64,000 nucleotides of DNA from positions 6,215,200 through 6,279,199 of the forward strand of contig OZ199839.1 in NCBI GenBank assembly GCA_964304625.1, in the 5' to 3' direction. Positions 30,039-60,300 of this stretch are shown one piece after another. A program made the position numbers and the translations under genes. This stretch comes from Kudoa neothunni. Lineage: Eukaryota > Animalia > Cnidaria. Under the pieces are notes generated by a model. That model saw nothing but the letters and a program-made list of their open reading frames with translations, did no database searches and had not been told where the DNA came from. Position 1 is the stretch's first letter, and each line of letters starts with the position of its first letter.

Positions 30039-33000
30039 ATGTCGGGGAAGTGGAGAACTTTCCAATCAATGCATCTTTTATATTTTTCTAGTACTTTTCA
30101 TTATATTTTTATAATGAACAATTTTTAGTTTTCTTTGGAAAATGTGTTTTTACATCGGAAATTGATAATAATATGATAAAATATCATTTTTCGCAAACAT
30201 CAGAAAAATACATTCTTTTTATTTCGGGATACAATATTGAAAATAGTAACAAAAAATGCGGTCTCCAGTTTTACGATAAAGACGAGTCGACGTTAAAAAA
30301 CATTCCTACGTGCACTACGGATATAAAAGGTAACGATGATGTCCAAACTTCGAAAATGTGCATTTACGAGTGCAAAAAAACAGAATTGAAGTTTAGTGGG
30401 GATGAATTTAAAAAAATTAAATATTTAAGATGGTGTCAAGGGAAAAATGACGATGATGTAAAAAAATGCTATACTAAAAGAATTTTTTCATTCGAGGGTA
30501 TTTAAATCTTTATGTATATAAAAACCACTAGATATTATTATAGACATTTCAATAAAAACTATTTTTGGAGTGGAAAAGGCGAATGATGAATTTACAGTTA
30601 AAGTTAAAAGCAAAAACAATATGGGTTTCACTCATAAAGAAAACTCTGATACTGAAATAATTCAAACACCTAACACTTCATTTTACACAGAATCATCGGT
30701 AAAACTTAAATCGAAATCATATAAATCAAAATATATTCTTGAATTTAACGATAAATCTCCCGAAATATATCTCAATCCAAAAAAACCAGCTGAAGATTGG
30801 TTTATTGCATCTGGAATAAAACAAACTACTAATTCCAAACATTATTACACACTACAATTACAGAACCCAGAACCATCAAAGTTGTGCTACTTTGGTATAA
30901 AAGAAATTAACGATTCACACTTTTCGTCCTCTTGCTCAGATATGAATAAAGCGGGACCATGCATACAACCTTGCTATAAAGCAACATTGTTGCATTCAAG
31001 TGATTTTAAATTCGCTCAAGTGCTTGTTAAATCAATCATTCAATCAACTTCAAAAGAATTCATTCAAACTGTGACATGTATTTATTTAATTTCATTATAC
31101 TTTTAATTGACATTGTAGTTGGCAGCAATCAACCTCTCGTTGTCCGTACAATTAATAATAGCGAAGTAACGTTAGATTTATCTAACTTGAATAAAAACGA
31201 AGATGACACTTCAGGGGATGGAGCAGTGATTACAGAAGTAAAAATAATGGAAAAACACTTTGGGATCGAAAAGGTCGGCGATGATGCAATATGTAAAGAA
31301 AGTTGCACCAGTTTCGCTTCAAAAACTATAACAGGACTTTCACCGTTAACTGAATACATTCTAAAAATTAAAATAATAGGCTTAAAAACTTTAGATTCAG
31401 CTGAAGTGAAACATTATCATCGATATTTTTATTTCAAAACCAAAGGTAATACGATATTGAAAGATTTAAATAAATGCTTAATTAGGGAATGAATTTCAAA
31501 ATGGTAAAGAAATCTCAGTATTGCCTAATATGGGTCAGCATACACAACTATCGCTAACTACCACCAATCTTTTTCCAGCGGGGTTTATAAATGACGCCAA
31601 ATGTGAACTGTATTACTTTGAAGATGGAAATGAGCCATCAAAATTCCCTGCTACTTGCGAGAAAAACAATGAAAAATTTTTTTGTTCTGATGCTTGTAAT
31701 AGTCCTTTTACGATTGTAAACCTTAACCCAAAAACAAACTACAAAATCATTGTTTGCTCCGACGGTTTCACTTGTGCTACTAGCTCGACTATTTCCAGTA
31801 TTTTTTTATATAATAACATAATAGTTATTTTATATAGCCAGTGGCATCGTCTTAACTGTAGAAAAACCAGCAGATGATACTGCAGTGAAAATTACTGCTA
31901 TCACGTCCTCAACGTCAGGTTCTTTTGGAGATTTATGGGGATATATTCTTTTGGAGAAAGAATCTAAAAAAAACCATTTTGGACTGTTTAAATAGCGTAT
32001 GTGATCCTGCGGTACAAACATCGGGAATTATCTCACTTGATATTTCATTGAAGACTATTGATGTTGCAATGATATACGAATTAATAATTATTAATAAAGA
32101 TTTCGCAAAACCAGTGAAATTAACAATCACAAGTAACTTAACTAATTTATAACGTAAATTTAATTATTCTAGGAGATATGGAAGTGACAGAGAATGAATT
32201 AACATTAAAGTATTACACAGCATTGAATAAATACAAAGTGAAATTATGGGAAGATATAGTAATTCACTCAAACTTTGTATGTTCGATAAAAAAATTTAAT
32301 TCTCAATTATCTGAATATGAAAATGCTGGCGAAAATAATTCTAAAATTGAGAAAATCTGTGATAGATTTGATGGATTGGAATCGATTATTGATCTTAGTA
32401 GTGAAGACAAACTGAATTATATTTCCGTTAGATATTTTTTTGTTAATTATGGAATACGCGCCACTTCTGACGGAACTAATATGGTGGTCAAGATGAATAA
32501 ATCTTTAGAAGAAATCAAAGATCGCGATTACAAGAAAGATTTCGAGCTTTTTTTAACCAATATAACACCATTTAATCAAATCAATATACATGACATGTAC
32601 TATATAGGAAGAGTCTATTCATCCTACACAGGTAAAACTAAAATGTACACTAAATTTAAGGTTGTTAAGATTATTTCGAGGAGATTCCGCATATAGCAAC
32701 ATTGCATCAAGATCAAATAAAATTACAAACGAAAAAGTGTTCTCTAAACTGCGAAAGATTTAAGGGTGAACATAAAATGAATCATATAATGGAAACTCAA
32801 GATCATCAAGATTGTACTTTGGAAGTTACCCAATCCAATTTGATGAGTTAGTTGAAGATTATTTTATAAGTTGCCCAAAACATGTTGACTTTCATTATTT
32901 TTATGATAATACTTTTGTTAAAAATACTGCACCAATTTTTAGCAGGTTTTATTATGAATTAGCTGTAGATGAAACAAACAATAATCTAACAGTTAAGCTG

Positions 33001-36000
33001 GTTAACGAAGAACCGTTTAATATATGCACATTTGAATGGATAGATGCTACATCGTCATCTCAAAATAGATTTTATTCAAACATTTGTAAGAATAATAAAA
33101 ACTGTGTTTACAGCTTGTGTAGTAATGTTACGTTTGATAATATTCCAGAAGATGTGAAAGCAGTAAAATTGCGTGTTCTCAAATTAGGGATGGAGCCCAC
33201 TATTGGTTATCAAAACAATATTTACATACGTAATTGTTTATATTCAATAAAATATAATTAAGTATTTTAGTGAAACATGGAAATGACGTTCCTGTTCCTA
33301 CATCTGGTGATAAAATTAAAATTGATATCTCTTCAAATAACAAGGATGAAAACGGTGAAGCTATAACTAGTTCAATACAACCAACTTGTTATCTGCAAAT
33401 GTGGAACGCATATGCTCCACTGGTTAAAGAGAATGGAAGAAAAATTGTTGGTAGTCCAGAAAATTGTAACTTTGCGAAAATGGATATACCAGCTAACCCA
33501 ACTGATGTACCCAACGATATTATGGCTGAAATAATCGGTATACCGCATTATTCACTAAGAAAATACTTTTATCATAAAATAAGTATATAATTTAATTATA
33601 ATAAAAGATATTTATATTATACTAGCTCAAAAAATATGTTGTCTAGTGGGTCTATATCAGTTACTGTAACCACTGATGGATTCAAATTTACACCTGATTC
33701 TACAGTTACAACAATCACATGTTCCATTTATGTGAGAGAACATAATAAATTATATTATTATCCTGCAATATGTACAGGAAGTGAATTGTGCGTAAAAAAA
33801 ATGCAATGATGAATTTACCATTGTGGGGTTATACTCTGGTGAAACCTATGATATAAAAGTGGTACCAAGTGGGAATTACAATTCTGTAATTTTGGAAAAT
33901 AAGAAAACAAGTAAAATTATTTATTTAACATCAAATAAATAATAATTAGCTGGCGAAACCATTGACTTTGAAATTTCGACAGAATCTACAAAAAATAATC
34001 TCAGAATAATTTCAAAAACAGGTATTGACGATGCTAGTACTAAAAATTGCTATTATCAGTTTTATGTTCATGAAGGAACAGACAGTAATAAATATAATCT
34101 TATTTATGTAATTATCTCTTAGATTCACCAACTAAAATATTGCAATCATGTGTTGGATGTGCAAATGATAGTGGAGATATTAAAAATTGCGATGATATTC
34201 AGTTCGGATCTTCCTTATATAACAAAAAGTATAACTACAGATTAATGATATACGTAGGTGAAAAATCTCCTCCATTTAAAATGGCGATTCCAGGTATAAT
34301 TTTTATGTAATGTTCTTATATCAAACGTCATATTTGCAGTCAATCTCGACACAACAGATCAGTCAAAATCAATTAATTTTCAAAAAATAATCATTAAAGG
34401 TGATATATCTAGTTTATTCTAATATATTCTCCACCGAGATGACCTAGAAAGTTAACCTAACAATTTTCAATATAAATTATTGCAGTGAGACCAAATGATT
34501 TGTTTGAAATTCTAAAATTGTCAAATTTAGTTTATTTTGATCGATGATAGTTTATTTTGATCGATGATCTTCTATCTAATCACTAATTATTTCCTGATTG
34601 TAAATAAATTTTCAATTGAACTGAGGTATGTTAAGTATTTGATAGAAATATAATATTTAAATTTTAATCAAGAATCACAATTTCAAGAACTTTTTGAGTT
34701 GTGTAATCTAATATATTCATTAACGAAAACTGGGTTTTTTTTAAGCCCTTTTTCCAACAAGTCGTCATTTACCCAGTGAGAGAAAATTTTATTCTTCACC
34801 AATTACAACATTTACTCGAATCATTTGTTAAATTATACAGTTTTTATCGATGGCTACCATCACAAAAATGTTTCTGATCGTTTCTGCTCTGATGGTTTAA
34901 ACACGAGAAGTTTCAGGTCGTAAGAATCTGAATCAGACAAGCTCTCAATATCGTCATGGGAACGATCCATAATTAATTTTTATATAATATAACTAAACAT
35001 AGTCTTTATATGTTTGGAAAAAATATATTCATATATATTAAACTAAAAAGTAAATATAACGATAGAGATTAGTTTAAAATATACAAGTTTTGAAATTAGC
35101 ATGTCAAAGTTCACTGAATTTATCTTTAGGCGATGATTTCGAAAACTTGTTTTTTCATGTAGAGAAAACAATATTTTAATTAATTTAAAATATTAATTAT
35201 ACGATTTATATATTTCTTTCTATTATTAACGTTCATGAAGTTATTATATTAGAGTTTTCATCCCGAGAAATTCAATATCACAATCTCTACATTTCTAATA
35301 TATTTTTTTTCTTTAAATTTTCATTTAAAAAATGCATGAATACTTAAAATATGGCGGTTATTTTAAACCTAAATTGCGTCCATCTGTGTTATGCATATAT
35401 TTTGTCAATTATTGTGTTATTAATATAGATTTGAAGTAATTTTTAATGTTTTAAAACAAAAGATTCTAAATAGTTAGAATATATGTTTAAAGACTAAAAA
35501 GTGCCGAATTTAATTATAAGTTGCGAGTTTGGTTGCAGTAATATCGTTTTTGATCCAGAAATCTTATAATTTATTTTATTAATTGTTCTGGTAGCCTTGT
35601 CTGGATTTGGGAAAACTAACACAGAAATTTGGTCAGCAAAATAATAATGATATTGGAAAACTCTCCGTAACATTGTCAGAATTTCCCAATGGTTATAAAT
35701 GCAATATAAAAATATCCAACTTTGAAGCTAACCATGATTATATCAAACCAACGTGCGCTCAAGATAATGATACTGAGTATTGCTTGGATAGGATGTGAAT
35801 CAGCCGATATCGAGATTTGGATATATAAATTCGAAAATAGATCGTTATATATCAGTTTGCTATAGTGAAACTGACGAGGAAAGCAAAATCTTGTAAAAAT
35901 GTGAACGTATTCGCCATAAACATGGGTAATTAGAATATTTATTCTATTCCTATATCTAATAAATGATATAAATAACATATTATTTAATAAATTTTAATTA

Positions 36001-38212
36001 TTATTTAGGAACAATACAAAAAAAATACTTATCAATTAAATCACGAAGGGAATGAAATCCGATTTACCTACAAAACAACATCAATAACAGGATGGAAGGT
36101 GTATGTGGATGGAAATGAGAATTCCATTAGCCAATCTAAGGAAACTGAATTTAAACGTGAATAATTATTCCGACACTGTTGAAACTAAACCAACTAATCT
36201 CCCGGGTCGATAGATATATAAATTATTATAAAATTGAATCCAGCCCTTTTGTGGCCTGCATTATTTTATTTACACAAACAATACATTCCTTAATAAAACT
36301 ATTACTATAAGATCTCAAATTATTTATTCTGTATCAACTATTGAAAATAACAATAATCAAATTAAATTAAATTTCACTCCAGGCCCCCTATAACGATGAG
36401 AATGTGCCACATTAAAAGTATATGAGGGTGAATGATGATGATGATGATCCCGATAAAATAGACAGTGTATTGAATGCTTGTGGGACTTTGGCGGATGGGT
36501 GCTATCAACTTTGTCAAGATGGTACCATTAATTTATCCAAAAGTTATCAAAAGGTTGGAGTGATTGTAAAACCAAGATTTGGTTCCACTGGATATAAGCA
36601 ATATTTCACAAGTAATGTATAATTACGTTCGTATAATTTATATTTCAATAGGGGGGTGACCTTGGTTTTAATTTGAGCGAAATCACTGAAACTGGCGTCA
36701 CACTTTCCAGACTTAATAATTATAAGAACATTAAAACAGGCATTAATTCCCAAACATGCACCATTAAAATATCAAGAGCCAATACATTATTCACTGAAAC
36801 AAGTGCTATATGTAATAACGGAAACTGCAACAACAGTTGCGATGAGTCATATTCCATTATCGGCCTTTCGGCTGGAACAAATTATTTAGTTTCAGTGACG
36901 ATCACTGATCTTGGTGTGAATGAGCCTTACATCAAAAAAATGATTTTCAGAACAAGTAACTATGAATGAAAACCATTTAAAATACAAAGTTTTAGGTGGT
37001 GGGACGGTATTGACAGATTCAGATATTGGAGAATACAGTGAATGGTGTAACTGCCACATTGACACCATTTACCAATGTGGATTCATCGTTATATGCAGAA
37101 TTCATCTTAAAAAGAAGGGCGCATCGACCCCAAAATTCATGGCTACATGTGAAGGATTAGGGGCTTGTGAGAACAAATGTCACAGTTCGTTCAAGATTAC
37201 AAACTTACAATTCGGGGTAACTTATGGAGTAATCATCGAGCCAACTGATGGTTACAAGGAAAAAAATATTGATATTACCACGCGTAACAAATATATCTGA
37301 ACTATAAAATTAATTACATTGGATTTTAGTTAATATTGTTACGCGTATAAGTTATACGCTGGACGAAGAAAGTGACATGAAAATTGACGTAATCTTTGAA
37401 GGTAAAAATGACAATAATAAATGTCCATTCATGCTGCATGAGAAGACTAAAAGTGGCATTCCAGAGCCCTGCAGTTACCTGGTGTAATGGTGTGAAGAGG
37501 AATGTTCAGCCAATGGATGTAACATTGATGTTAATGGATTATTGAGAGGAGAAGGATTACAGATTAACAGTGAAAGTGAAGGACCATTCAACCTATCAAA
37601 TCCACGATATTCCATGTAAATAAAAATTATTTTAATTAATTGTATATTTTAACCTATAATAATTGTATTTTATGGAATAAAGATTCAAAAATCAAAAAAT
37701 TTATTGGGGTATTTGAAATATAGTTATATATTTTTAATTATGATTTTAGTATAATTAATTTAAAAATGGGGTAAAATTAATAATATGTAGATGAAAAATA
37801 TCTTAGAAGTGAATATACTAATATTGAGATATTTGATATAGTTCCAATACTAATAAGGAAAGTAGAGGAAGGGTATATTAAATTTTACCAAGTTTTTGCT
37901 AATTTTTAATTAATTTAGTAAAATTAATAGAAATACCTGTATTAAATTTGAAATAATATAACATAGATAGCAAAGAAAAAAGCTGAGCGTGGAAGCAGCA
38001 AAAAATAGAAATCCGTAATTTTTGTTGAAAATTTTGGTATTTTTTAATTTTAAATAGGACCGTTCATCAGATACATGTAAAAGTCAATCGTGGATTCATA
38101 TTGAATTATGTTTAGTATATATGTGATGATACCAATTATGCTCCTTTTGTTAGTGGTGATACTATTGGCTATTTTCAGAAGAAAATCTAAAGATCCTGTT
38201 CACTATCTGTAA
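30039..38212 (+). CDS. Large Cys-rich FN3-like type I membrane protein, paralog 1 (most frameshifted; possible pseudogene)
   Basis: Exon 1 MSGKWRTFQSMHLLYFS|IFFGKCVF; ~22 GT-AG introns at positions shared with paralogs 2 and 3; FN3-like motifs ITGLSPLTEY, IVNLNPKTNY, IVGLYSGETY, IIGLSAGTNY, ITNLQFGVTY; TM IYVMIPIMLLLLVVILLAIF; tail RRKSKDPVHYL*. Confidence 0.85.
34320..35554. mobile_element. ~1.2-kb TIR element in an intron of paralog 1
   Basis: Intron 34294-35594 is ~1.3 kb versus ~40 nt in paralogs 2 and 3. Degenerate ~30-bp TIRs: ATCAAACGTCATATTTGCAGTCAATCTCG / CGAGTTTGGTTGCAGTAATATCGTTTTTGAT. Confidence 0.65.
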
Positions 38213-38429
38213 TATGGAAATAAGAAAATATACACTTTTGTCTAACTAAACAATTAATAGTTGTTAGTTTTACCTATTGGTGATTGTCGTCGTTTACGAG
38301 TCACAAATGTTGAGTTGTTTTATAAAATTAAAGCAATATTTTATAATTAATTTAAGCAAAATCGCAATTTTAATTATATTGCTAATGTAAAGATTGTTAG
38401 ATTAATTAAATATTTTTATCGCCAATACA

Positions 38430-38707
38430 CAGTCGAACCTGGATATAGCGATGTTTTGATATTGAACGTCCTATTTATTAATTTTGGAATTATTGAACTT
38501 TATTTTCAAATTTATTCGTTTTTTAAAATTAAAAATATATACAAAGACATTTTAAAAAAATATAAAATTTTATTTGGTCCCTTATAGCGATTGTGAGGTT
38601 CCATCAAATAACGTAGCTTTTTGCTTTTTGAGGTCGGAGACTCGATATGGCGAATTTTTACAATGACCCCATTTCAGCTTATTATTAACGAAAAAACGAG
38701 ATAATAG

Positions 38708-38743
<36 letters not shown>

Positions 38744-39300
38744 AATGACGTAACGCGAGGAAAAGGTACAAATAACAAATAATTTTAATTTTTTATACAT
38801 ATTTTTTCTCAAAGTATATCCACAAGATGGTATGGTCATTCGTAGTTGGATTCCTATACATGCGAATGGATAAAAAATTGAAAAAATTCTCATTTTTTTA
38901 GGATTTAAAGAATTTTTTTTATGGATATTTTAAATGTTTAAAAGCTAAAGTGTATCCTAGGTTTCCAACGCAAAAAATATGTTCCAGTTCATGCCATTAT
39001 GGGAAAAGCCATCCTTACCGCAAGGAATGTTGTCTCATGAATTTTTCTGCAGGTAGAGGATGGCTTCGTTAAGTAAGAAAAGACACGGAAACCGATACAA
39101 TAAACTTCTAACGAGAGATTGGAAGCATCGATACCTCAATATCTGATGAGTGCACTTAAAAGATATTTTTAGATTCCAAAAAAGTACAAAGATGAAATAT
39201 TATTTATGTCGATGAAACAGTTATTTTTATAACAAAACTTATCAAAGACTTTTAATTTTGAAAGATGAAAAGAATGTTCCCCGGAAAAAATCAATTCAAA
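38430..39300 (+). mobile_element. pogo/Tigger relic
   Basis: Terminus CAGTCGAACCTGGATATA (same as at 49351); degenerate GWL..RHG and YVDET motifs; interrupted by a Helitron. Confidence 0.65.
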
Positions 39301-39303
39301 GAA

Positions 39304-40310: not shown

Positions 40311-40724
40311 TTTGTAATAAAATTAATGTAAATTGTCGGTTGAGCATGCGCATAATGAAACCAAAAAATACACTCAGTAACAAAATTGATACATCATTTA
40401 AGATCTCATTTAATATGTAGAAAATATATTGCCTAATTGTAAAATAATATTTCTCGTGATATTTTAATAGATAAAATTTTTAATTAAATATAAATTTAGA
40501 AAACATGAGTCCGCATATTAAATAACAATAAAAATATCACCACATAATAGTTTATTTATAGTGTTTATTGTATTAAACTTACGAATATAATAATTATTTA
40601 ATAGAAAACTAGGTATTTAATTCTTCCGACTTAATTAAATCAATAGGTTTTTCGTTCTTAAATAACAATATAAATCCATATTCATATATAGAAATAGTAT
40701 AAGACGTCGTCATCATCCCCAAAA

Positions 40725-43700
40725 ATGATAGTAATATCGGAAAGGATGAGAGTATTTCTCCTCAATGTGCATCTTATTTTTTACATGTAAAGTTTTTAAA
40801 ATCTTTATAATAACTATTTGTTGTAAGTTTTGATGAGAAATTTTGTCACGACACTCGACATTGATAACAATATAATGAAACTGAATTTTCAATCAAATAC
40901 TAAAAATTTGTTGTAACACTTTCTGGGTACAATATTGAAAAATAGCCACAGGAAATGTGCTCTGCAGTATTATGATAATGATGATAGGTCACTTAAGCTA
41001 TTCCAGATTGTAGCACTAATATTAAAAATGCTAAAGATGATGCAGATTCAAAAAGTTTGCATTTATGATTGCAAAAAAATTGAAATAGAATTTGACTATG
41101 AGAAATTTAAGAAAATTAAATATTTAAGATGGTGTCAAGGGAAGGGCGATGATGTAATAAGGTGCCCTATTAAGAGAGTATTTAATGTTAAAGGTATTTA
41201 AATATCATTTATTGTTTAACAATTATTATATAAAGAGCTATACATAAAAAGTGCTCACACTGTTGTAAAGAATAATTACGATTTTTTCGTTTCCGCTACA
41301 AGTAAAGTCAATAAAGGCTTTTCTATCAAAGTTGACGATACAGAAGAAACTAAGCAGGATCCAGACAGTGACTTTTACACTGCGAAAACTAAAGCTCTTC
41401 ACACAAAATCATTTCAACCAAAATATTTGGTTATATTCAATGATCAATCCCCTGAGATATTTCTCAATCCTAAAAAACAAACTGAAGATTGGTTTATTGC
41501 AATTGGAAACATACAAACTGCTGAAAAAGGACATTATTATACAATACAGCTACAGAACCCAGAACCGTCAAAGTTGTGTTACTTTGGTATAAAGGAAATT
41601 AATGATTCACACTTTTCTTCCTATTGCTCAGATATGAATAAAGCGGGACCATGCATACAACCTTGCTATAAAGCAACATTGTTGCATTCAAGTGATTTTA
41701 AATTCGCTCAAGTGCTTGTAAAATCAGTCGGCCAATCATCATCAAAAGAATTTATCCAAATTGTGACATGTATTTAATTGAGTACTTTTAACTTTTTTAT
41801 AGTTTTTTAGTTTGTAGCAGTCAACTCTCCGTTGACCATACGGATAATATTGGTCAGATGACTCTTGATTTATCTAACTTGAATAAAAACGAATGTGAAG
41901 ATGCAACGATCGGAGGGGCGACTACAGGAGTAAAAATAATGGAAAAACATTTCGGGATCGAAAATATCGGCAAAGATGCAACATGTGATAATGGTTGCGA
42001 CGGTTTTGATCAGAAAATTATAACAGGGCTCTCACCATTAACTGAATACATTTTAAAAATTAAGATAACAGGGTTAACGACCATAGATTCACCTGAAGTG
42101 AAACATTACCATCGATACTTTTATTTCAAAACTATAGGTAATATTGTATTTAAAGGTTTATCTAGATGGTAAATTAGGTAAAAAATTTGAAAGTGGAAAT
42201 CAAATTTCATCAACTACTAATAATATTGAGAATACAAAACTTTCGCTATCTATCACCAATCTCTTTGTCGCTGGATCTAATAATGACGCCATATGCGAAC
42301 TGTACTACTTTGAGGATGTAAATGATCCAGCAAAGTTCCCTGCTACGTGTGAGAAAGATGAAAAAAAAAATTTTTGTTCTGATACATGCACTGGCCCTTT
42401 TAAGATTGTAAACCTTAATCCAAAAACGAACTATAAAATCACTGTTTGCTCCAAAGGTTACACTTGTGCTGATACCTCTAAAATTTCTAGTACTTGATAT
42501 ATATAATAGCATGTCAATTATTGTAAACAGCTAGTGGAATTGTTGTTCAGTTGACAAAATCAGAAGATACTTCCAAAAAACAAACGACTGTCACCATGTC
42601 TCCTTCTAGTGGAAGCGGAAGCCCGGGCAGTTCATGGAGTTACATTTTGATAAGAAAAAAATCTTTAGAAACGATAATTGATTGTTTGAGCGACTGTGTT
42701 CCCACTTTAACCTCAAATAATATTGTTTTTGAATGGCAAATTCTCACTGCTGATATTGCTTATGAAGTAGTTGTAATTAATGATGATTATGCTTTTCCAG
42801 AGAAAATTGACATATCAAGTAATTGATTAATAGAAAAATAAATGTAATTGTTTTAGGTGGAGTCGTTGATGGTGATCAAAAAATGAATATACGATTTGAT
42901 TCAACAGGACAAAAATATAAAGTGAAATTCAAGAGTGAGTTGTTCGCCAGTATTGATAAAGATTGTATGGTTAGAATATTCAAATATGAAATCACTGATT
43001 ATGTGCATGGCGATGAAGATAATAGGGAAATCAAAAAAAGGTGCAGCATGCTTAATACAGAATTTATCATTAAACATAATGGGCAAAACAAACGAAATTA
43101 TATTTCGGTCACTTATTCGGTCACTAGAATACCTGAGCGTGCTAAAACCGTGTTTGCTAAAGCAAAAATGAACGAAGTTTTTGATGGTGTTTACGACATT
43201 AGCGATAAAAAATATACTCAGAAGTCACAACTAGCCAGATCAGAAGATTCAGAATCAGGATCTAAGGGTGACGGGACAATAACACCAAAAGTACCAGATG
43301 GAGTAAAAAAGCCAAGGGAGGGAGGAGATCTACAATTAGAGGTAGAAGTACAAGCAAAGCCAGAACCAATTACCTTCACCAAAGGGTGGGTCTTTTCCTA
43401 CTTCATTGGTAATATCAGTTTTAGTAATTACTGTATCTTTTTTAAGATTATTATGAGGAGATAACGCATGTTGTGACATTGAATGGAGACAAATTAAAAT
43501 TTTCCGTAAACAAGTGTCCATTAACCTGCGATGGATACAAAGATAAAACGAAGCTAAGTTCCTTCTCTAGAACTCAATGTGGATTGTCTTGTAACAATGA
43601 TAGTTGCTCAATTCAATTCGGCGATTTAATTGAAGATTATTACATAAGTTGTCCAACATATTTCGATTTTCACTATTTTTATGACAATACTTTTATTCAA

Positions 43701-46700
43701 AATTATGCACCTGTCTTCAGCAGATTTTATTACGAATTAACGATAAATGATGCAAATAGTAAACTCACTGTTAAATTGGTTAACGAACAACCTTCTGAAA
43801 TATGCACATTTGAATGGATTGACGCAACTGCATCATCTTCTAATAGATTTTTCTCAAACACTTGTGAGAACAATTCAAATTGCGTTTATAGTTTGTGCAG
43901 TAACGTTACATTTGGAGATATTCCAGAAGATGTAAAAGCAGTAAAAATACGTGTTCTCAAATTAGGAATGGAACCTACTGTTGGTTATCAAAATAATATT
44001 TATATATGTGATAATTTAAATTATATGCAATATAAATATATATTATCTAGTGAAACACGGCAATGATACTTCTGTGACTACATCTGATGACGGTAAAATC
44101 AAAGTTAATATTGCCGATAAAATTAAACACGAAGATGGGAATGTTGTAAATGGTGGTCCTGCTGCATCGTGTGAGTTGAAGTTTTGGAATACATATGCTC
44201 CATTAGTTAGCGAAACCGGGAGGAAAATTGTTAGCGAGATAAGTCCATGTACCATTGGAGAAATGAGTATTACACCGAATCCAACCAATTTGCCAAATGA
44301 TATTATGGTAACAATAAAAAATATACCAAATTTTTCTCCTAGAAAATACTTCTACCATAAAATAAGTAACTTTTAATAATTTAAAACCGTATAATATATT
44401 TTTTAGGCCCATCAATTTCTCTTTCTAATGAAGAGGTTACTGTTAATTCAAGTGTTAATGGATTCACACTCACTCCAAAGTCCGGATTAAATAATATTTG
44501 CAAAATTTATGTAAAAGAGAATAATACCCCATATTATTACCCTGCTATATGCTCAGGTGGAAAATTGTGTGCGGATAAATGCAGTGCAACCTTTGTTATC
44601 GTTAATTTACATTCGAATACCAATTATGCTATTAAAATTGTACCTAGTGGAAATTATGCGGTAAAAACAATCGAGAATAAAAAAACAGGTACGAATTTTA
44701 TTTATTGTTAAATATAATATAAATAGATGGTACTACAATCGAATTCGTAATTTCGTCTGATTCTAAGAAAAACAATCTTAAAATAACACCGACAAAAACT
44801 TATGATACTAATAGTATTATTAATTGTTATTATCAATTTTATGTACATGATAAAGAAGACAGTAATAAAAGTAACTTAACTTTTGTAATTTATTTTTAGC
44901 TTCCCCGACACGTATACAACAGTCATGTGTTGAATGCGATAAAGGGCCGAATAGTAGTAATAATAGTAATAATAAAAAATGCAAAAATATTAATTTTGGT
45001 GATAAGATCTATAACAACAAGCATAACTACAGATTAATGATTTATGTAGAGGGAGAATCTTCGCCATTTAAAATCGCAATTCCGGGTAAAATTAGTTTGA
45101 TTTTGTGTGTAATATTTTCTTAGCCTTTTCTCGAACTGGAAAACTTACACAAAAATTTACACAACAAAATCAAGATAAAATTGGAAAACTATTCATTACC
45201 TTGTCAGATTTTCCAAATAATAATAAATGCGCAATAAAAATATCAAATTTTGATGAGAATCCACAATTAATTGAACCTACCTGTTCCTCAACTGCTAAAA
45301 ATGGTTACTGCATATTGGAATGTGGAAAAGAAAATGCTGAAATAGGTTATGTTAATTCTAAGGTTGATCGATATATATCTGTTTGTTATGGTGACACGGA
45401 TGAAAAAGCAGAAACCTGTAAAAAGGCTAGGGTCTTTCCATTAATAATGGGTGATTATAATAAATATTTTTCTTGAATTGTTAAATAACTTTAAAAATTA
45501 AATTAACTTGTTTCATTTTCTAATTCCATTAATTTTATATTATTCATTATTTAATAGATTACAATCAAAAACATACTTATACTCTAAGCCATCTTAATGA
45601 CAAGGTTAGTTTCGCCTACACAACGAACTCAAAAACACAATGGATGGTATTTGTCGATGAAAAAAATGACCCGAACTCCGACACTGAAAAAAATAATTTG
45701 AATATAATAAGTTACCTCAGATAAAATAGCGGAGAGGTTCGCGACATTATCAGTCGATAGATATATGAGTTATTATAAAGTTGTCTCAGCAACTTTATGG
45801 CCTGGAATATTCTATTTTACTAATACCACCTTTCTGAATAGCACTATTCCCCTGAAATCAGAGATTATTTATTCCATAGCAACTTTTGGAAATAACAATA
45901 ATCAAATTAAAATTAAATTCTCCCCTGGTCAGTATAACGATGAAATGTGTCGCATAATAGTATTCAAGGTGAGTGATAATGGCGATGATCAATTAAATGA
46001 TGTTTTAAATGTTTGCGATAAATCAGAGGAAGGATGCTACCAACTTTGTCAAGATGCAGTTATTAATTTGAAGGGAGATCATCAAAAGATTGGTGTAATA
46101 GTTAAACGAAGAATTGATTCTGTTGGCTTTAAACAATACTTTAAAAGTAATGTTTAATTTTTTTATAAATTTAATTGTTCATAGGAGGAGACAATAACTT
46201 TGAATTGAGTGAAATTACTGAATCTGGAGTTACGCTTACTGGTCTACACAACTACAAAATTATTAAACAAGAAGAAAATGAAGCAGAATGTACAATTAAG
46301 ATTCGTAAAGCAAATACGATATCTTCTGAAACGACGGCTACATGTAACGATAATGTTTGTGACATTAATTGTAAAGATTCATATACTATTACTGGCCTTA
46401 CAGCCGGTACAAATTATATGATTTCCGTCACAGTTTCGAATCTTGGTTTTAAGGGTCCGTATGTTCAAAAACTTGCTTTTAGAACAAGTACAATTTAACT
46501 ACAACCCTCATGAAATTTAAAAAAATTTAGTTGAAGGAATTGAGTTAGTTGCATTAGCAGATTCAGATTTAACAATTAATGGTGGTAGCGCTATTTTAAC
46601 ACCCTTTCAAGCTAATGATTCACTTCCAATATGTCGAATTTACCTTAAACAAAAAGATGAAACGTCTCCAAAATTTATGGCTACATGTGATGGGATTGGA

Positions 46701-47735
46701 AAGTGCGAGCATAAATGCAACAATACATTCAAAATAGTAAATCTCGAATTGGGTGTTACTTACGAAGCAATCGTCGAACCGTCAAATGGGAGAAAAGAGA
46801 AAAAATTTGAAATTAAAACAGGTGATAAATATTTTCTTACTTTAAATTAGAAACAATAATAGATAACGTCATGACGAATGTTGCGGTAACATACGACAAA
46901 GATAGTGAAATAAAAATTGACGTAAATTTTGATAAAAAAGATAACCCAAAATGTCCATTCATGCTACATGAAAAAACTGATAATAACATACTGGGGCCAA
47001 TAATTCTTTGGTGCAGTGACGAAGAGGAATGTTCAGCCAATGGATGCGTAATTACTCTCAACGGGCTATCGAGGGAAAAGGATTATAAATTAAGTGTGAA
47101 AGTGAAGGACTTGTCGACTTATAGAATCCATAATATTCCTTGTAAAATATAACCTTAAGATTTAATAATTTCATTAAAACAAATAATAATTTATATGATA
47201 AAGACTTGAATATTTCAAAATCCCAAGGGTGAGATTAATATTCTTAAAACTAGATATATATATATATATTTAATGATATTTTTAGTAAATTCTACATCGA
47301 GATTGATGTAATCTGAATATTTATATAAGAGCATAACATAAGGAGCGAATATATCAATATTATGGTAGATGGTATTGTTCAAAAAATAATTAGGAAAGTT
47401 GAAACGGGGTAATAATATCATTATTTAACTGTTATAATTAAATTTATTTTAGTATACTTTTTTTAAATTTATTAACACTAAAGATACATGTAGATAGTAA
47501 AGAACAGTACGACCAAGAAGCTGCGAAAAATATTAATTCGTAAATATAAAAAGATGTTTCATATTTTTAATTTTTTATAGATCGGTTGGAAAATATATGT
47601 AAAGTAGTATTTATTTCTTCGTAACTTATTGTTTTTAGTGTTTACGCAATGATTCCAATTGTGGCTGGATTATTGGTAGTGATCGGATTAGTAATTTACA
47701 ACAGAAAACCCAACGACGATGCATATGAGTTGTAA
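40725..47735 (+). CDS. Large Cys-rich FN3-like type I membrane protein, paralog 2
   Basis: Same exon series as paralogs 1 and 3; hydrophobic N-terminus (MCILFFTFLMRNFVT); six FN3-like signatures; TM IVYAMIPIVAGLLVVIGLVIY; tail NRKPNDDAYEL*. A few 1-nt indels (~40755, ~40905-41055, ~45715). Confidence 0.88.
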
Positions 47736-50810: not shown

Positions 50811-51779
50811 TAATAATTATGTACAATATGAAATAGTTATTGATTTCTTTTAATTTCACATCATGATCCATCTTTTTAAGAATTAAAAAAATTGTTTGTT
50901 CGCTTTATTGGTCATAACTTTGATACTAACTAATTTCTGTTACCACCTAAGTCTTTGGTTGTGGGAACTCTCTCATGATGTTTGCTTAAACCCGCGTTAG
51001 AAAATACATGGCGCAAATGATAAAATAATCAAAAAATCGCTTCGCTCAAGATTGAAAACTACGTTATTATCCTCAAAACTTGATCTAGCAATCATCCAAA
51101 TACTTCAGGAATAGTTAAAGAAATGTCATAGATTATATTTCTCACTCAGAGCCGCTAACATAGCTATTAGGTAAATTTAAATCGTTATTCAACCAATAAG
51201 AATAAGCATTAATTTAAATACAATTTGTTTTTAAAATTAAATACAGTTATTATTCATTATTATCCAATAAATTGTCTCTAAAAACAAATACGTTCTTAAA
51301 CGGCCGATATATTTAGATCCGTTCCGCGGAAAAAATTTAAAATTGTGATTTCGTTTGTGTTTGCTCACACGAACGAAACTCACGTATTTGCCATCCCTGT
51401 TCAAAAGTGAGTTTTAGTGGATTAAACGGATTAAAATTGGATGTAAGCACTGCCTGATAGTGAGACCTCAAATTTTGCAAAAATTGCGTCAAATTAACGT
51501 TATTTCATTTTTTAGATAGATTATTTAATTCAATGATTATTAACATCGAAAAATTCACAGTTTTTAATACAGAAATTAATTAAAACCACCAACTACCCAA
51601 TAACGAACCTTGCATTATCGACATCTTACTGTATATTGTAAAATGGAATAATGATAACCATATTATAAGTCTATATAAAAATATTTTTGTGGCAATTAAA
51701 TTAAAATCATAAATATTAATATAACTGTTTTGACTTAATGACGAGTTTAGTTCAACTTATGTTTTTTTAATTTAAAGTT

Positions 51780-53176
51780 TTAACCCTCGCAGGACCAACT
51801 GCTGTCATTTGTGACCCCAATTTCGACAGTTTGACTTTGTTTGCATATTGAATAAAATGAGAGGGCTAAAAAATTCTGGATTCCTTAATTATAGACCGTA
51901 ATTGATAATTATAAAGTTATGATGAAAAAAGTGTATTTACTGATTTAAATATTTTACTTTTAATAAGCGATGTGCTCGCTACTTCATTTCAATGTAACAG
52001 TTACGAATCGATATCAAAATAATAAATATTACAATAAAAGCTATTGACAATAATTTTTATTAAAAAGTGTTGAAGTATTATTAGAAGCATATTAAGTGTA
52101 TATTATGGTTTTGCGCCGATGAACTCCGTTCAAAAATTGTGATTATCCAGAGATTGTCCTTTAGAAGAGATTTCAACAAGCAATGTAATTGTTGTATTCG
52201 CGCATAAAATACAAATCGAAACTAAGATAAAACTAAGGCAGAAAAATCGATACGTTCGAGGATTAAGTAAATTAGAGTATTTGGATAGGGATGGCTCATT
52301 TTTAACGCCACAGCCGCGTTAATGGAAATGTGGTAGAGCTGGGATAGTATCGTTTCCCATGGCAAGAATAGAAAGTATGGATAAGGTTGTCATTGTGGAT
52401 TCTTATACGATTTTTTAGAAGAATGAGTTTAGAATAAGGTGTCGGAAAGTAGTTGTTAGTAGGAACCGTAGAATGAATGGAAAATCGAATGCAAGAGTTT
52501 TGTTGTTTAAAATGATTAATAGAAAGGATTACTTAAGGGTTGATGGAACATGAGCGCATAGAAAAGATTTTTAAACACAACAGTAATGAAGGACTGCATA
52601 AATGGAATTTTTAAGTCAAATCAAAAAGGAGAGTCAATATAATCTGTCAGAAAATTTTAAACATTTATTTTTATATAAACAAATGTTTTATAGTCTCCAC
52701 ATCTGAATAATTAAAAGTTAGTTAGGAAGAGCGCCTCCATTTAATAAATAAAGATCAAATCATAATCTCCAGTTGCATACACGTATTATCGAGCCAATCT
52801 GAGGTTGTAATCACCATATACAATACATTGGGTCTGATCTCAAAGTTCATTTTATAACTCAATTAAATATTATGTTATCGTCGTCTACTCTTTGAAAATG
52901 TTCTAAAATAGTGGTATCTATCTATTTAAGGCGTGATATCCATTCATATACGGGTAACATGGAAAATGGTTTATGTAACGATGTAAGCATTTAATAGTTA
53001 CTTAGAAATGGTAGAAGTCTCACCGACTAATTTTTGTAAAATGCATATAATAAGTATAAAAACTAAATAGAGTAACAGAGTTTAGCTGTTTAATATAATG
53101 AAAAAGTCACAGGGTCAAAAATGATCCCAGTTGGTTCCTCGCGTAAGGTTTTTTAAGCTGGTGCTTCAAGGGTTAG
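51780..53176. mobile_element. piggyBac-type non-autonomous element
   Basis: TTAA-CCCTCGCAGGACCAACTG...TGACCCC at the left; GGGTCAAAAATGATCCCAGTTGGTTCCT...AAGGG-TTAG at the right. Confidence 0.7.
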
Positions 53177-53519
53177 TATTCAACATTACTGTCATAATTT
53201 TTACCTATTCTTAGGCATGTGCGAATGGCAGGTATCAATTAAATTCATATTTATAACATTAAATTACATTAAAATAACCGTTCATTATTCAGTGATTCTA
53301 TTCATTAAGTTTTAGTAGTTATTTTTATACAAACATAATATATTAATAGTATGATACTATTCGTTTTTTATTTAATATATATATATATATATATAATAGA
53401 CCGAAGAATAAATAATTATTTTACGATTTACCTGTATAATGAATAATTCGGAAAGTCTAATATACGTAAAATGAAGTGATTTTAAGGTTAAAATGCTGGA
53501 TAGTGGCCGCATGTACCGA

Positions 53520-54036
53520 TTAAAGATTATATTTAGACCGAGCATTAATCATAGATTTTTTAAATCAAATTAGTATGATATTTGTTGAACATTTAATTAT
53601 CGGAATGAATGGATTTCATCTAATGAATTATCGAAAATAATTTACTAGAAGCATTTGATACAATTAATCAGCTAATAATTGTATAAAATAGTGAATTTTA
53701 TTTATTAGAGACATAAAATTAATTAATAATTGGGGATAGCTAACGAGAAAATTGTAGCAATCCATTATAATCACCATTGCCACACTCAAATTTATGGAGA
53801 AATAAGGGTTACGTTATTAGTAACATTGAGTGTTAGTGCCTGTAGCAATAATTAAGAGATAATAAGAGTTCAATGTACTATTACAACAACTAATGTTGAT
53901 AACTAATAGAATGACATAAATTAATCTAATAATAATGATGCAAAATTGATAAATACAAAAATTAAAATAATTAATAGGTTCGTTTTAGTCAGTTGTCGCT
54001 GATTAGAATTACGGCCGCTGTTCTATATTTAAACCT
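53520..54036. repeat. Dispersed ~500-bp repeat, copy C (uninterrupted)
   Basis: Same orientation as 5010-5480 (TTGATACAATTAATCAGCT..., AAAATAATTAA.AGGTTCG...). Confidence 0.75.
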
Positions 54037-54380
54037 TTAGTATGATACGAACTGGTTGTATTGACTTGCACGTATGCTTCTCGTATTAAATTGCACATCA
54101 TGAGAGTTGATTAAAATCATAATAATAACGAATTATTTTCATAGTTCTCGTTAATCCCATGATAAAAATTTGTTTTTCTAAAATATTGTTTCTAATAACA
54201 CTAATAATTATTAATTAATAGGATTATTTTAGTTTTATTCATGGATAACGATTGATTTTATTAAAAGTGGAATTTGTAATTATTCGGGCTAAATGAAAAT
54301 GATTTACGACTTATTATAATATATTAATGTAAATATCCTTCGTGAATACAAGTATTATTTTTGTCATAAAATCTCCAAAA

Positions 54381-57300
54381 ATGATTTTATCATCGTTTAA
54401 ACAGAGATTTGTCCTAAAATTATGTTTGTTTATTTTTTCACGTATTCACTCAAATTATTTCGTACTTTTAATATTTATTAGCAATAATGAATAAATTGGT
54501 TTCTACACAAGATATTGATAATAATTTAATGAACTTGAATTTTTCGCCCGATCAAAATAAATACGTTGTTTCTTTAGCTGGTTATCACATTCAAAATAGC
54601 TACAGAAAATGTTCCCTACAATATTACGGTAGTAAGACTTCCTCTTTTAAAGCTATTCCAACGTGCAATACTGATATAACGACTGCTAATGCAAACGTTG
54701 ATTTCACTTCAGAGAAATGCATCTATGATTGTAAAAAAGTGGAATTGAAATTCAATTGGGACCAAATTAAGGAAATGAAATATTTAAGATGGTGTCAAGG
54801 AAAAGATGAGGAAGATGTCAAAAAATGTCCCTTAAAGAAAGTTTATAAAATCAATGGTAATTTCGATACATATGCCATTATAAATAATTTTTGGTTAGAT
54901 ATATATCTTAAATCTACATTGGGGGTAGATCGTGCAATCGGTCAATTTACTGTGCGCATAAAAACTAAAATCGATAAGGGTTTCATTCTCAAATCTGACT
55001 CTATTGATGAAGTTATTCATGCTGCAACTAGCCGTTTTTACACGGTAGAATCAATTCAACTAAAAACAAAATCATATCAACCAAGATATATTGTTCAATT
55101 TAATGATAATTCACCTGAAATATTTCTGAATCCCAAAAAACCTGTCGAAGATTGGTTTATTGCAACGGGGTCAAAATCAGGATCTGAATCTATGTATTAT
55201 TTCACAATAATACTTCAAAATCCCGAGCCGTCCAAGATGTGTTACTTTGGAATAAAACATATTAACGACTCACACTTTTCATCTTATTGTTCTATAATGA
55301 GTAAAGCTGGTCCGTGTTTTCAACCTTGTGATAAGGCGACATTATTCTATGATTCAGATTTGAATTTTGCTCAAGTACTTGTAAAATCAGTTGGACAATT
55401 AAGTTCAAAAGAATTTATTCAAACTATTATATGTATTCCATAATTATCTCAAAATTTTATAAAATTATGTAGTTCGAAGTGAACATCCCACCGACGCTTT
55501 TTCGGCTAAACAAAATGATCAAGTTAGGATTGATCTATCAGAACTAAACAAAAATGGTGAAGACCAAAATAAAGTTGACAAAGCACAAATTACAGAAATG
55601 AAGATAATAAAAAAGTTTATGGGAACAGAAAGTATCGGAGATGATGCAACCTGTACAGATGACTGTAATGAATTCGCTTCAAAAACTATAACGGGGCTTG
55701 AATCGTTAACTGAATACATTTTAAAAGTGAAAATAAAGGGTCTAACAACAGTAGATTCGCTCGAAGTGGATCATTATCATGGTTACTTCTATTTCAAAAC
55801 TACAGGTAACAACCAAGATAAAAAAATATATATCAAATTATTTAATAGGGAGGGATTTTATTTATAACAATCAAATTACACCTAGCGCAGATAATAAGGT
55901 ACATACAAAATTGACTTTAACACCGTCCAGTCTTTTTTCTACTGGATCTACCAACGCCAACGATGCAAAATGTGAACTATTTTATTCTGTTGGAAATGAG
56001 AAATCCCAATTTCCTGCTACTTGCGAAAGAGATGCAAAAAGATTTTTTTGCTCAGATATCTGTAAAAATGAATTCACCATTATAAACCTTGATCCAGAAA
56101 CAAGCTACAAAATAACTATCTGCTCCAAAGGTTATACATGTGCTGAGAGTAACCCTGTATCGAGTAATTTTTATGTAAGTCAAATTTTTCTTAGTTTAAA
56201 TAGCAAGTGGTAGTACTGTTACCATAATTAAATCAGACGTAACTACAGCACGAAAGATCGAGGCTACAATGTCTGCTGCTCCTAATGGAAATATTGTGAA
56301 TTCCTGGCGTTATATTTTATTGGAAGAAAAATCCAAGAAAATTATAGTGGACTGTTTAAATATCGTTTGTGCTCTTGAAGCGCAAACAGATTTAGGATCA
56401 AAAAAACTAAACGTTCCATGGGCTACTATTGACGCAGAAGTTTTATATGAATTAGTTGTGATAAATATGAACCGTGCAAAACCAGTCAAAAAGAAGATAG
56501 AAAGTTATTAAAAAATAAGCGGAATTAAATATATTTAATTAGGAGCCACCGAAGAAGAGACAAGCGAGATGATTCTAACATATGATAAAACACGAAACAA
56601 TTATAAAGTGAAATTTACAAGTGCTCTGTTCGAGAACAATAATAAACAATGCACAATTAAAAAATCTGACAAAACGCTGTCTGCATACATCAATGCTGAT
56701 GATGGTAGTTCAGCAATTGAGAAAACTTGCAACCAACTTAAAACTGCTTTTAATATTGACCTTAGTAGTGGAAACAAGCTGGCTTATATTTCAGTTACGT
56801 ATTCGGACACGAAACCTTCTTCCCCTATTAAGCCACCTAAAAGTCTATCAAGTCTCGCTAAAGAAAATAATGAAGAAACCTCCCATGGTAATTACGTAAA
56901 TGTGGAAAAAGCTTATATTTCTAAATCTATCATAGAAAGGTTAGAAAGATCGCTTCCTGATAGCCTTAGCGTACCAGGGGGGCAAAGAATCGATGGGCCA
57001 GCTGATTTACAAGGAGCTCCAGTAAATGGAAATCCAAGTCATGATAGCAACGGAACCGAGAAAAGTGAAACTGCAAAAATTGAAGATAAAAAAAAAGATG
57101 CGATAAAGAAAGAGCAAGAGGAATCAACGCCACCACCAAATATCAATTTTACTGCAGGGAAGGTCTATTCGTATTACATAGGTAAATCTGTTTTGGGAAA
57201 TTATATAATGTTATTAAGATTTTTACGAAGAAATAACGCATGTGGCAGCATTACAGGGAGATAAAATAAAATTAAATGTTAATAAATGTTCTTTAAATTG

Positions 57301-60300
57301 TGATGGGTATAATGATAAAAGGAAGCTAGGTTCCTTCTCCACTGCTACAACTGGGTCACCATGTAACAATGATAGTTGTGCATTTCAATTCGACGAATTA
57401 GTTGAAGACTATTACATAAGTTGTCCTAAATATTTTGACTTTCATTATTTTTATGACAATACATTTGTGAAAACCAATGCACCATTTTTCAATAGATTTT
57501 ATTATGAATTAGCTGTCAGTGATCCAGTTAATAAGTTAACGATAAAATTGGTTAACGAACAACCTTCTGAAATATGCACATTTGAATGGATTGACGCAAA
57601 TGCATCATCTTCTAATAGATTTTTCTCAAACACTTGTGAGAACAATTCCAACTGCGTTTATAGTTTGTGCAGTAACGTTACGTTTGGAGATATTCCAACA
57701 GATGTAAAAGCAGTAAAAATACGTGTTCTCAAATTAGAAATGAGGCCTATTGTTGGCTATCAAAATAACATTTATCTTTGTAATCGTTTAAATGATGTAT
57801 TATATAAATATATATTCTAGTGAAACATGGTAACGATACTTCCGTTACTTCATCCGATAATAATATAAACATAAACATTAGCACTAATAACAAAGATGAA
57901 GATGGTGCAGCACTTACCACTGGTACCGCCCCAACATGTCAACTCAAGATCTGGAATGTATACGCTCCATTGTTTAAGGAAACTGAAAGGAAGGATGTTG
58001 GTCAACCTAATAGTTGTAACTTTGGAAAAATGATCATTACACCAAATCCAAATGATTTACCAAATGATATTATGATAACAATAGCAAATATACCGAGTTA
58101 TTCGCCTAGAAAATACTTTTATCATAAAACTGGTAGTTTATGTAGATTTTGCAACTTATTTTACAAATATAGATCAAACAACTACTCTTTCTGGTGGGTC
58201 AATATCGGCTACGCCAGCAACAAATGGATTCACACTTACTCCAAGTTCTACAGTTTCAGAAAGCACGTGCTCCATTTATGTGAGAGAAAAGGATAAATTA
58301 TATTATTATCCAGCTATATGCACAGAAAATGAATTGTGTATAAAAAAAGTGTAATTTGCAGTTTACTATCATTGGATTGTACTCTGGCGCCCGACTATGA
58401 TATTAAGATTGTACCTAGTGGCCAATATAAGGTTCATACTCTTGAGGGCCAGAAAACAAGTAAAAACATTTGAACTTTTTGTGGATAATAATAATAATAA
58501 TTAGTTGGTAAAACAATTCAATTCATAATATCACCTGAGTCCAAAAGAAATAATCTTAAAATAATATCGAAAGAAAGTATCGAGAATGATTCCCAGTGCT
58601 GACTGCTATTATCAATTTTATATGCATAAAGAAGGAAACAGTAATAATAAAAATATTTAATTCTTTAATTTAGTATTTAGCTTCATCAACAAATATACAA
58701 CAGTCTTGCGTTGAATGTGCTGATTCATCGAGTAGTCGAAAAAAATGCAATGATATTCAGTTTGGTTCAGGCTTATATAATAATAAGCATAATTACAGAT
58801 TAATGATATATGTAAATAACAAATCACCACCATTTTAAATTAGAAATTCCAGGTAAAAAAAATATAAATATTTTTTAATATTATGAGTAGCTTTTTCCCG
58901 ACATGGGAAACTACATCAAAAGTTTGAAAAAGCAGTTAACAACGATATTGGGAAAATCTATGTTAAATTATCAGATTTTCCAATTGGGGATAAATGTGCC
59001 CTAAAACTATCCAATTTCGAAGATGTCCACAATTTTTTGAAGCCAAGTTGTACAACGAACACTGACAATAACTTCTGCATAACTGAGTGCACGTCCCAGA
59101 ATATTGAAATTGGATATGTTAATTCCAAAATTGATCGTTATCTATCAGTATGTTATGGCATAGATGATACTGATGCGAAATCCTGCAAAAAATCTAGAGT
59201 TTTTCCAATTATAATGGGTAATTATAATAAATATTATTTTAATAATTTAGTGATATTGGCATATTATAATTCAATGTTTTTAGATTATAATCAAAAGCAT
59301 ACTTACTCTATAGCTCATACAGATGGTAAAGTTCGTTTTTCCTACAAAACAAACTCAAAAACCGAATGGACGGTGTATGCTGATGGAGAAAAAGACTCAT
59401 TTAGCGATTCAGAAAAAACCAACTTGGACGTTACCAGTTACTCTGATTCAATAACAGATAAAATCTGCAAGTTTCGTTGTTGACAGATATATGAGTTACT
59501 ATAAAATTAACTCAACACTATTGTGGCCAGGAATTTATTATTTTACGAATACTACCCTATTTAATGACACTATTCCTCTAAAATCAGAGATTATATATTC
59601 CATTTCAGCCGTTGAAAATAACATTAATAACTTGAAAATTCGATTTTCTCCTGGTCCCTATAATGACGAAATGTGCAAATCACTATATTTCAAGTAGATT
59701 CTACTGGCAAAGATAAAACAGAGAATGTTTTGAACGTCTGTGAAAATAAAGAGAATGGTTGCTATCAACTTTGTCAAGATGCTATTATTAACTTCACAGG
59801 AGACCATCAAAATGTTGGGTGTGATTGTTAAAAGAAGATTTGATTCGGCTGGTTTCAAACAATACTTTAGAAGTAATTGAAATCCAACATTATTAATAAA
59901 ATTTTTTAGGAAACGATATTGGTTATAACCTGACAGAAATCACAAGCAACAGTGTTAAACTTACTGGGCTTCAAAATTATAAAAAAAATTAAAAAAGAAA
60001 AATAATCCTCAATGCACAATTAAAATATCTAGAGCAAATACTATATCTACTAACACCATGGGCTCGATGTAGTGGTGGTGAATGTAATAAAAACTGCGAT
60101 GAGTCATATTCGATTACTGGCCTCTCAGCTGGTACAAGTTATATAATTACAATAAAAGTTACAAACCTTGGTGTGAATAATGATTATATCAAAAAAGTTT
60201 TCTTTAGAACAAGTAAATGTAGCTTGTGATCATATTATTAATTGTATTTAGTTGATGGAGAACAGCTAACAGAATCAAATTCTCCAAACGCTATCATTGC

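Follow-up and report, generated by a model that had tools for sequence, protein, structure and literature searches.

Three long genes lying head to tail in a 64,000-nucleotide stretch of an animal genome (contig C2, positions 6215200-6279199; hereafter the window, from whose first letter positions are counted unless a contig is named) have very probably exchanged segments time and again, through ectopic gene conversion in the germline and through unequal crossing-over, with neighbouring copies as the usual partners. We judge the three genes to be members of three old subfamilies of a large, lineage-specific and previously unnamed gene family with at least 60 close members. The recurrence of exchange that a preliminary description of the window had proposed is borne out by tracts of differing age, with divergences of 0% (tract 1, between copies 1 and 2), about 0.5% (between copy 1 and L043, a member of its own subfamily) and about 3.5% (tract 2, between copies 2 and 3), together with older switches on the kilobase scale.

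Three subfamilies in one gene cluster

The assembly, of an AT-rich genome, comprises 40.26 Mb in four contigs, three of them large. The window is AT-rich, with a GC content of 25-40%, and its three genes, each of about 6.5-7.6 kb, are interrupted by many short GT..AG introns.

30039-37623, forward strand: copy 1 (subfamily A), from ATG to stop, a multi-exon gene with GT..AG introns of about 40-75 nt
40725-47152, forward strand: copy 2 (subfamily B), with about 18-19 exons in an approximate splice model
54381-60888, forward strand: copy 3 (subfamily C)

Over alignable columns the three copies are about equally distant from one another, with pairwise nucleotide identities of 64-66%; the informative sites shared by copies 1 and 2 number 933, those shared by copies 2 and 3 number 928, and those shared by copies 1 and 3 number 837. 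Treating them as a set of three paralogs, as the preliminary description did, proved too narrow: for the exon that contains tract 2, 150 or more matches occur across the genome, spread over the three large contigs, and in about 60 the amino-acid identity is 55% or higher. Copy 1 has a twin, L031, which is 99% identical to it and located 38 kb upstream. Subfamily A includes copy 1, L031 (C2:6.207 Mb), L042 (C3:9.50 Mb) and L043 (C2:11.92 Mb); subfamily B includes copy 2, L032 (C2:6.281 Mb), L035, L039, L040, L041 and L044; and subfamily C includes copy 3, L033 (C2:6.304 Mb), L034 (C2:6.33 Mb), L036, L037 and L038. The order along the chromosome is L031 (A), copy 1 (A), copy 2 (B), copy 3 (C), L032 (B), L033 (C), L034 (C, on the minus strand) and L035 (B). 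This cluster occupies 6.18-6.36 Mb of a 12.04-Mb contig, i.e. a mid-chromosome position, and other members are dispersed over the three large contigs.

An alignment of 17 genes of the family was made, and region trees, approximately unbiased (AU) tests and pairwise homoplasy index (PHI) tests were computed. Runs of agreement between two of the window's copies were assessed on their three-way alignment, the order of its 3177 variable sites being shuffled in 5000 permutations.

Two tracts that cross subfamily boundaries

Two tracts join copies of different subfamilies within the window.

30932-31027, forward strand: tract 1 on the copy 1 side, with no difference from copy 2 or from the twin L031 over its 96 nt
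41624-41719, forward strand: tract 1 on the copy 2 side, a derived haplotype common only to copy 1 and L031, with its right half also in L032
43773-43966, forward strand: tract 2 on the copy 2 side, near-identical to copy 3 and bearing diagnostic bases of subfamily C
57545-57738, forward strand: tract 2 on the copy 3 side, probably of the donor type

Along tract 1, copies 1 and 2 are identical at 96 of 96 nucleotides and copy 3 matches at 67 of 96. The run of 29 variable sites at which copies 1 and 2 agree exceeds all 5000 permutations (p<2e-4), and their synonymous divergence (dS, by the Nei-Gojobori method, NG86) is 0.05 in the tract vs 1.06 gene-wide. In the 17-gene alignment (columns 1079-1175) no differences separate copy 1, L031 and copy 2, and L032 agrees with them over the right half; these four genes have derived bases in common, whereas L042 and L043 of subfamily A and L040 and L044 of subfamily B keep the common state. 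The tree of the tract unites copy 1, L031, copy 2 and L032 in a clade with support 100/99, both flanks restore subfamilies A and B, and the AU test rejects the monophyly of A within the tract (p=0.0009). Genome-wide, exact copies of tract 1 occur only in copy 1, L031 and copy 2, followed by L032 at 94% and by the next match at 86%, and the four genes concerned all lie within 75 kb. Since the twin L031 also bears the tract, the event is older than the tandem duplication described below, if that duplication is real; the transfer itself may have run in either direction.

Along tract 2, copies 2 and 3 agree at 187 of 194 positions and copy 1 at 158 of 194. Here the run of 13 variable sites shared by copies 2 and 3 again exceeds all 5000 permutations (p<2e-4), and dS falls to 0.08 from a gene-wide value of 1.13. 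In columns 3441-3629 copy 2 shows bases typical of subfamily C, for example GCA where other B members have AGC (AAC in L041), and some of its bases are found otherwise only in copy 3; before column 3441 the bases are of C type in copy 3 and of B type in copy 2. The tree of the tract joins copies 2 and 3 (93/92), both flanks return copy 3 to L033 and L034, and AU tests reject within the tract the monophyly of both B (p=0.007) and C (p=0.016). The best genome-wide partner of tract 2 is copy 3 at 97%, the next match standing at 89%. Because copy 2 carries the diagnostic bases of subfamily C it looks like the recipient, and we infer that copy 2, 13.8 kb upstream, received C-type sequence either from copy 3 itself or from a near ancestor of copy 3, the six or seven differences having presumably been gained since the transfer. 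In copy 2, tract 2 lies within a broader and older C-like stretch of about 0.5-0.8 kb (about 43530-44349) that is closest to L037.

The flanks of both tracts are about 65-80% identical, and the best genome-wide partner of each is a neighbouring gene, separated from the next match by a gap of eight points in identity. The preliminary description had reported both near-identities, their extension to synonymous sites and their origin by ectopic conversion, and the counts, the drop in dS and the conflicting topologies of the per-window trees uphold it for these two tracts. It had also described tract 2 as continuing into the next intron. This did not hold: for that 41-nt intron copies 2 and 3 agree at 42 of 51 positions, below copy 2 with L037 (47/51) or with L044 (46/51), and copy 3 with L033 reaches 49/51. 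A third stretch, proposed as an exchange between copies 1 and 3, did not survive as such either.

33720-33810 (partner 58268-58358), forward strand: claimed tract of copies 1 and 3, a resemblance at the level of subfamilies A and C

Copies 1 and 3 are indeed the closest pair there (75 of 91 positions, vs 57 of 91 for copy 2), but their best run, of 6 variable sites, is ordinary (p=0.54), and the tree keeps A (95/93) and C (85/81) monophyletic with a long branch leading to B. With all A and C members alike and the run length ordinary, an exchange between copies 1 and 3 at this place is ruled out, and the resemblance goes back either to a varying rate of substitution in B or to an event of great age.

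Mosaics in the wider family

In three further segments of the window, part of a gene is far more similar to one or two other family members than the rest of it is.

35995-38290, forward strand: tract common to copy 1 and L043 (C2:11.915 Mb, opposite strand), 2.3 kb long and about 99.5% identical
40571-41843, forward strand: 5' part of copy 2, 85-100% and mostly 92-100% identical to L032
59517-61250, forward strand: 3' part of copy 3, in which some patches match L033 and L034 at 96-100% identity

Copy 1 and L043, which lie 5.67 Mb apart, differ by 13 mismatches over 35995-38290, the gene upstream being about 85-88% identical; mismatches number 5-40 per 100 nt up to position 35994 and divergence resumes after 38290, so that both boundaries are sharp. 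Within the tract lie introns, the stop codon and about 670 nt of 3' flank, and dS is 0.012 there vs 0.29 upstream; either gene may have been the donor. Copy 2 is highly similar to L032, which is found 25 kb downstream beyond copy 3, over its 5' 1.2 kb and then 70-85% identical to it. In the 3' 1.7 kb of copy 3, exact runs of 99, 216, 104, 140 and 133 nt are shared with L033 and L034, with 75-90% identity elsewhere.

Trees of different regions conflict with one another, with full support. The sister of copy 2 is L032 at the 5' end (100/100), L040 in columns 6400-7600 (100/98) and L032 plus L035 at the 3' end (100/99). L041 (C2:895800-905700) is chimeric, its 5' 1.8 kb falling within C (100/100) and the remainder within B (100/100), and the monophyly of B at its 5' end is rejected by the AU test at p=1e-54; across all such comparisons, exchanging the sister groups of one region for those of another is rejected by AU tests at p values between 3e-4 and 1e-54. 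With the PHI test the signal is strong, whether computed overall or within each subfamily (z from -20 to -52), and a maximal-segment test of the GENECONV type retrieved 51 of 91 pairs at p<=1/300.

Putative tandem duplication, assembly quality and read contigs

Copy 1 itself stands within a repeated unit.

1-37769, forward strand: second unit of a head-to-tail tandem duplication of about 37.9 kb, the units being more than 99% identical

The first unit, C2:6177341-6214999, ends 200 nt before the window. Between positions 9366-37769 and C2:6186600-6214999 (28.4 kb) there are 16 mismatches and 93 gap openings, nearly all of the latter 1-nt homopolymer differences, and positions 1-9400 are 99% identical to C2:6177341-6186634. 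Indels thus outnumber substitutions between the units, which points to uncorrected long-read errors. The duplication could be a very recent event or a false duplication in the assembly, and the summed contig depth at tract 1, about 3.6-4 times baseline in X1 and about 1.6 times in X2, does not decide between them.

In this region 1-nt indels occur in the assembly about once per 300-600 nt, and homopolymer-length errors break the reading frames of all three copies. Copy 1 shows apparent frameshifts at the A8 runs at 31966 and 33794, both of which are A7 in L031; in copy 2, short-read contigs are one base shorter than the assembly in the A5 run at 41056 and at position 45715; and further sites lie at about 40900-40945 and about 58340. 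The splice models, made by script, are approximate and over-splice at such 1-nt indels.

The reads were consulted as Logan short-read contigs, of low depth, from four runs of one sample, probably that of the assembly itself. They agree with copy 2 over most of the 6 kb compared, matching it without difference over 41766-42786, 42097-43700 and 43955-45591, and in tract 2 they contain a second variant at exactly six positions, corresponding to the differences of copy 3, at about half the summed depth. The contigs agree with the assembly but, being De Bruijn contigs, break inside the shared tracts, and at their open ends they continue into further paralogs, namely copy 3, L034, L035 and L043. The agreement with copy 2 and the recovery of both variants of tract 2 argue against a polishing artefact.

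Such an artefact, in which mis-mapped paralog reads overwrote a neighbouring gene and the twin of copy 1 is a spurious duplicate as well, is very improbable as an explanation of the mosaics. It would fit the excess of gap openings over substitutions between the twin units, the 1-nt contradictions between contigs and assembly at 41056 and 45715, and the length of tracts 1 and 2, about that of one short read; against this, mis-mapping is unlikely between sequences only about 80-85% identical, tract 2 is not identical (6-7 differences) and both of its variants are found at equal depth, and read contigs agree exactly with the flanks of copy 2. Nor can short-read polishing give rise to kilobase-scale tree conflicts or to a 2.3-kb tract shared with a gene 5.67 Mb away, and the haplotype of tract 1 reaches partly into a fourth gene, L032, where it has differences of its own.

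Some further observations concern the region and the assembly. Each of the three large contigs carries copies of a dispersed repeat of about 1 kb found at 6195-7222, which number at least 40 and are 76-85% identical. Pieces of 178-552 nt, repeated in inverted and in direct orientation with 67-91% identity, are found at 2338-5481 and at 53486-54036, the latter upstream of copy 3, and look like a transposon. The fourth contig, of about 18.2 kb, carries COX1 at C4:2716-3945 on the minus strand, with 8 in-frame TGA codons, which indicates a mitochondrial genetic code in which TGA encodes Trp. The best matches of the genome's HSP70, in assorted protostome animals, reach about 78% identity at most, as would suit a divergent animal.

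Mechanism and competing explanations

The patterns described above are best explained by repeated non-allelic homologous recombination among the copies over evolutionary time. Double-strand breaks would be repaired with a paralog as template, presumably in the germline; non-crossover repair would paste tracts of about 100 nt to 2.3 kb between paralogs, mostly neighbours 10-35 kb apart, and unequal crossing-over would yield chimeric genes and the 37.9-kb tandem duplication. The internal patches, which have two boundaries, speak for non-crossover repair, i.e. gene conversion, and the single-switch chimeras and the tandem duplication for unequal crossing-over.

Several points weigh against this interpretation. 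The windows of the tracts were picked after inspection, and the AU p-values for short tracts are therefore optimistic; four-fold degenerate sites taken alone are moderately significant in the short tracts, with 1 of 12 differing in tract 1 and 2 of 23 in tract 2. The read contigs are of low depth, stem from the same sample and break in the shared tracts, so that the linkage of tract to flank is not proven by single molecules, and the rate of indels in the assembly leaves the exact gene models uncertain. Finally, the data come from one sample, which bears on whether exchange is ongoing.

The closest pair of copies might also shift from segment to segment without any exchange, through local constraint or uneven substitution rates. 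This accounts well for the stretch at 33720-33810, where A and C are alike and the B branch is long, and it gains something from the fact that the relative distances of the subfamilies differ between the 5' and 3' regions and that tract 2 sits in a generally conserved exon, in which four-fold sites differ by about 25-30% between other pairs vs about 50% gene-wide. As a general explanation it is nonetheless highly unlikely: the identity in tracts 1 and 2 is specific to particular neighbouring genes and not to subfamilies, silent-site divergence falls 14- to 20-fold, the tract shared by copy 1 and L043 takes in introns and untranslated flank, and AU tests reject the subfamily trees.

A programmed system of diversity, of the kind known for VSG, var, ves and msg genes, would entail frequent and possibly somatic conversion in which the silent copies of an archive serve as donors for expressed ones. 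The preliminary description had drawn the link to antigenic variation, of which the likeness to a large mosaic archive stands, as an analogy only; a membrane anchor and a subtelomeric location, which the analogy would lead one to expect, are not found. Although the size of the family, its pervasive mosaicism, a raised ratio of nonsynonymous to synonymous divergence (dN/dS of 0.3-0.5 between close pairs), a hypervariable low-complexity linker at one position and the secreted look of the proteins would all suit such a system, we give it very little probability, since the divergences of 0.5-3.5% in the tracts indicate old, fixed germline events, the C-terminus is without a membrane anchor, the cluster lies mid-chromosome, no expression site is evident and, among the listed runs containing the stretch, there is no RNA run.

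The proteins of the family

The predicted proteins are about 1800 amino acids long, cysteine-rich and modular. As read from the sequence, their N-termini resemble signal peptides, the signal being split by an intron, and no hydrophobic transmembrane or glycosylphosphatidylinositol (GPI) signal tail was seen at the C-termini, which end in ...IH(N/D/E)IPC plus a few residues (...IHNIPCKI* in copy 2); the proteins therefore look secreted. Protein searches were run with exon translations. A Pfam scan of seven exon translations gave nothing above the cut-off, a word-index protein search with one exon matched a single 118-amino-acid fragment, and a full HMMER search of 1.84 billion representative proteins returned eight matches, all weak or fragmentary. 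The latter are mostly unnamed metagenome or Logan fragments with 26-39% identity, the exception being a fragment of 106 amino acids at 72%; two are named, a protein from a bacterial metagenome-assembled genome and a fern protein, and both are weak repeat matches. With these matches alone, the family stays an orphan.

A 172-amino-acid exon folded with 25 family sequences yielded an all-beta model with a predicted local distance difference test (pLDDT) score of 75. In this predicted fold residues 1-64 resemble immunoglobulin (Ig) C-type domains and residues 74-172 fibronectin type III (FN3) domains, with Z of only about 6 and Foldseek E values of 1e-3 or above, and the modules may thus be described as Ig/FN3-like beta-sandwiches. 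The raised dN/dS indicates that the family evolves fast.

Each gene of the window has a hypervariable, charged, Pro/Ser-rich linker of low complexity at one fixed position (32450-32600 in copy 1, 43134-43360 in copy 2 and 56820-57170 in copy 3), which is unalignable between subfamilies (35-58% identity), with kilobase-scale tree switches nearby. An intron expansion of 1.25 kb at about 34300-35570 is confined to the genes of subfamily A (copy 1, L031, L043 and L042); it has weak matches of 67-80% at about ten other loci and looks like decayed repeat fragments. L034 (C2:6329800-6339700, minus strand) contains an insertion of 2.97 kb with terminal inverted repeats of about 190 nt, at the equivalent of about 59500 in copy 3, which is probably a DNA transposon.

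Relation to known systems and implications

Conversion between paralogs has been reviewed for Caenorhabditis, including the GENECONV survey of Semple and Wolfe and the cases of fog-2/ftr-1 and col-12/col-13, and its frequency was found to be negatively correlated with distance (PMC3966223). The genes studied here resemble these paralogs in having short, identical or near-identical tracts within moderately diverged genes, introns and silent sites included, in the preference for close neighbours in the same orientation, and in that local identical stretches suffice despite moderate divergence. They differ in belonging to an undescribed orphan family of at least 60 long members (about 1800 amino acids), in exchanging sequence across deep subfamilies (gene-wide dS of about 1.1) and in one tract that joins genes 5.67 Mb apart in inverted orientation.

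A diverged archive and mosaics assembled from the segments of several donors are also features of the mosaic VSGs of Trypanosoma brucei (PMC3708902) and the ves genes of Babesia bovis (PMC7485966). In those unicellular parasites, however, switching is somatic, takes place during infection into a dedicated expression site and concerns surface-anchored antigens, whereas the present family belongs to an animal, its events look old and germline, and no expression site or anchor is evident in it. Plant RPP8 genes of the nucleotide-binding leucine-rich repeat (NLR) class, a clustered and fast-evolving recognition family (bioRxiv 10.1101/694240), are comparable in their tandem and dispersed paralogs, in inter-locus exchange that gives rise to novel combinations and in raised protein change; the protein fold and the kingdom differ, and one sample is at hand here. 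The mechanism is ordinary and of the textbook kind, and the new part is the undescribed gene family that shows it.

It is conceivable, if improbable, that the more than 60 secreted Ig/FN3-like proteins serve an animal of small genome, possibly a parasite, as a repertoire for generating diversity. If so, frequent conversion between clustered copies would continually supply new variants with which to engage a host or partner, and the family would be a metazoan counterpart of the protozoan archives of antigenic variation.

For the annotation of the region, the homopolymer indels and the putative 37.9-kb tandem duplication have to be taken into account. Between neighbouring genes, exchange reaches across subfamilies even where divergence at silent sites exceeds 1, and, the members of the family being demonstrably shuffled, any tree, dating or selection analysis must allow for conversion.

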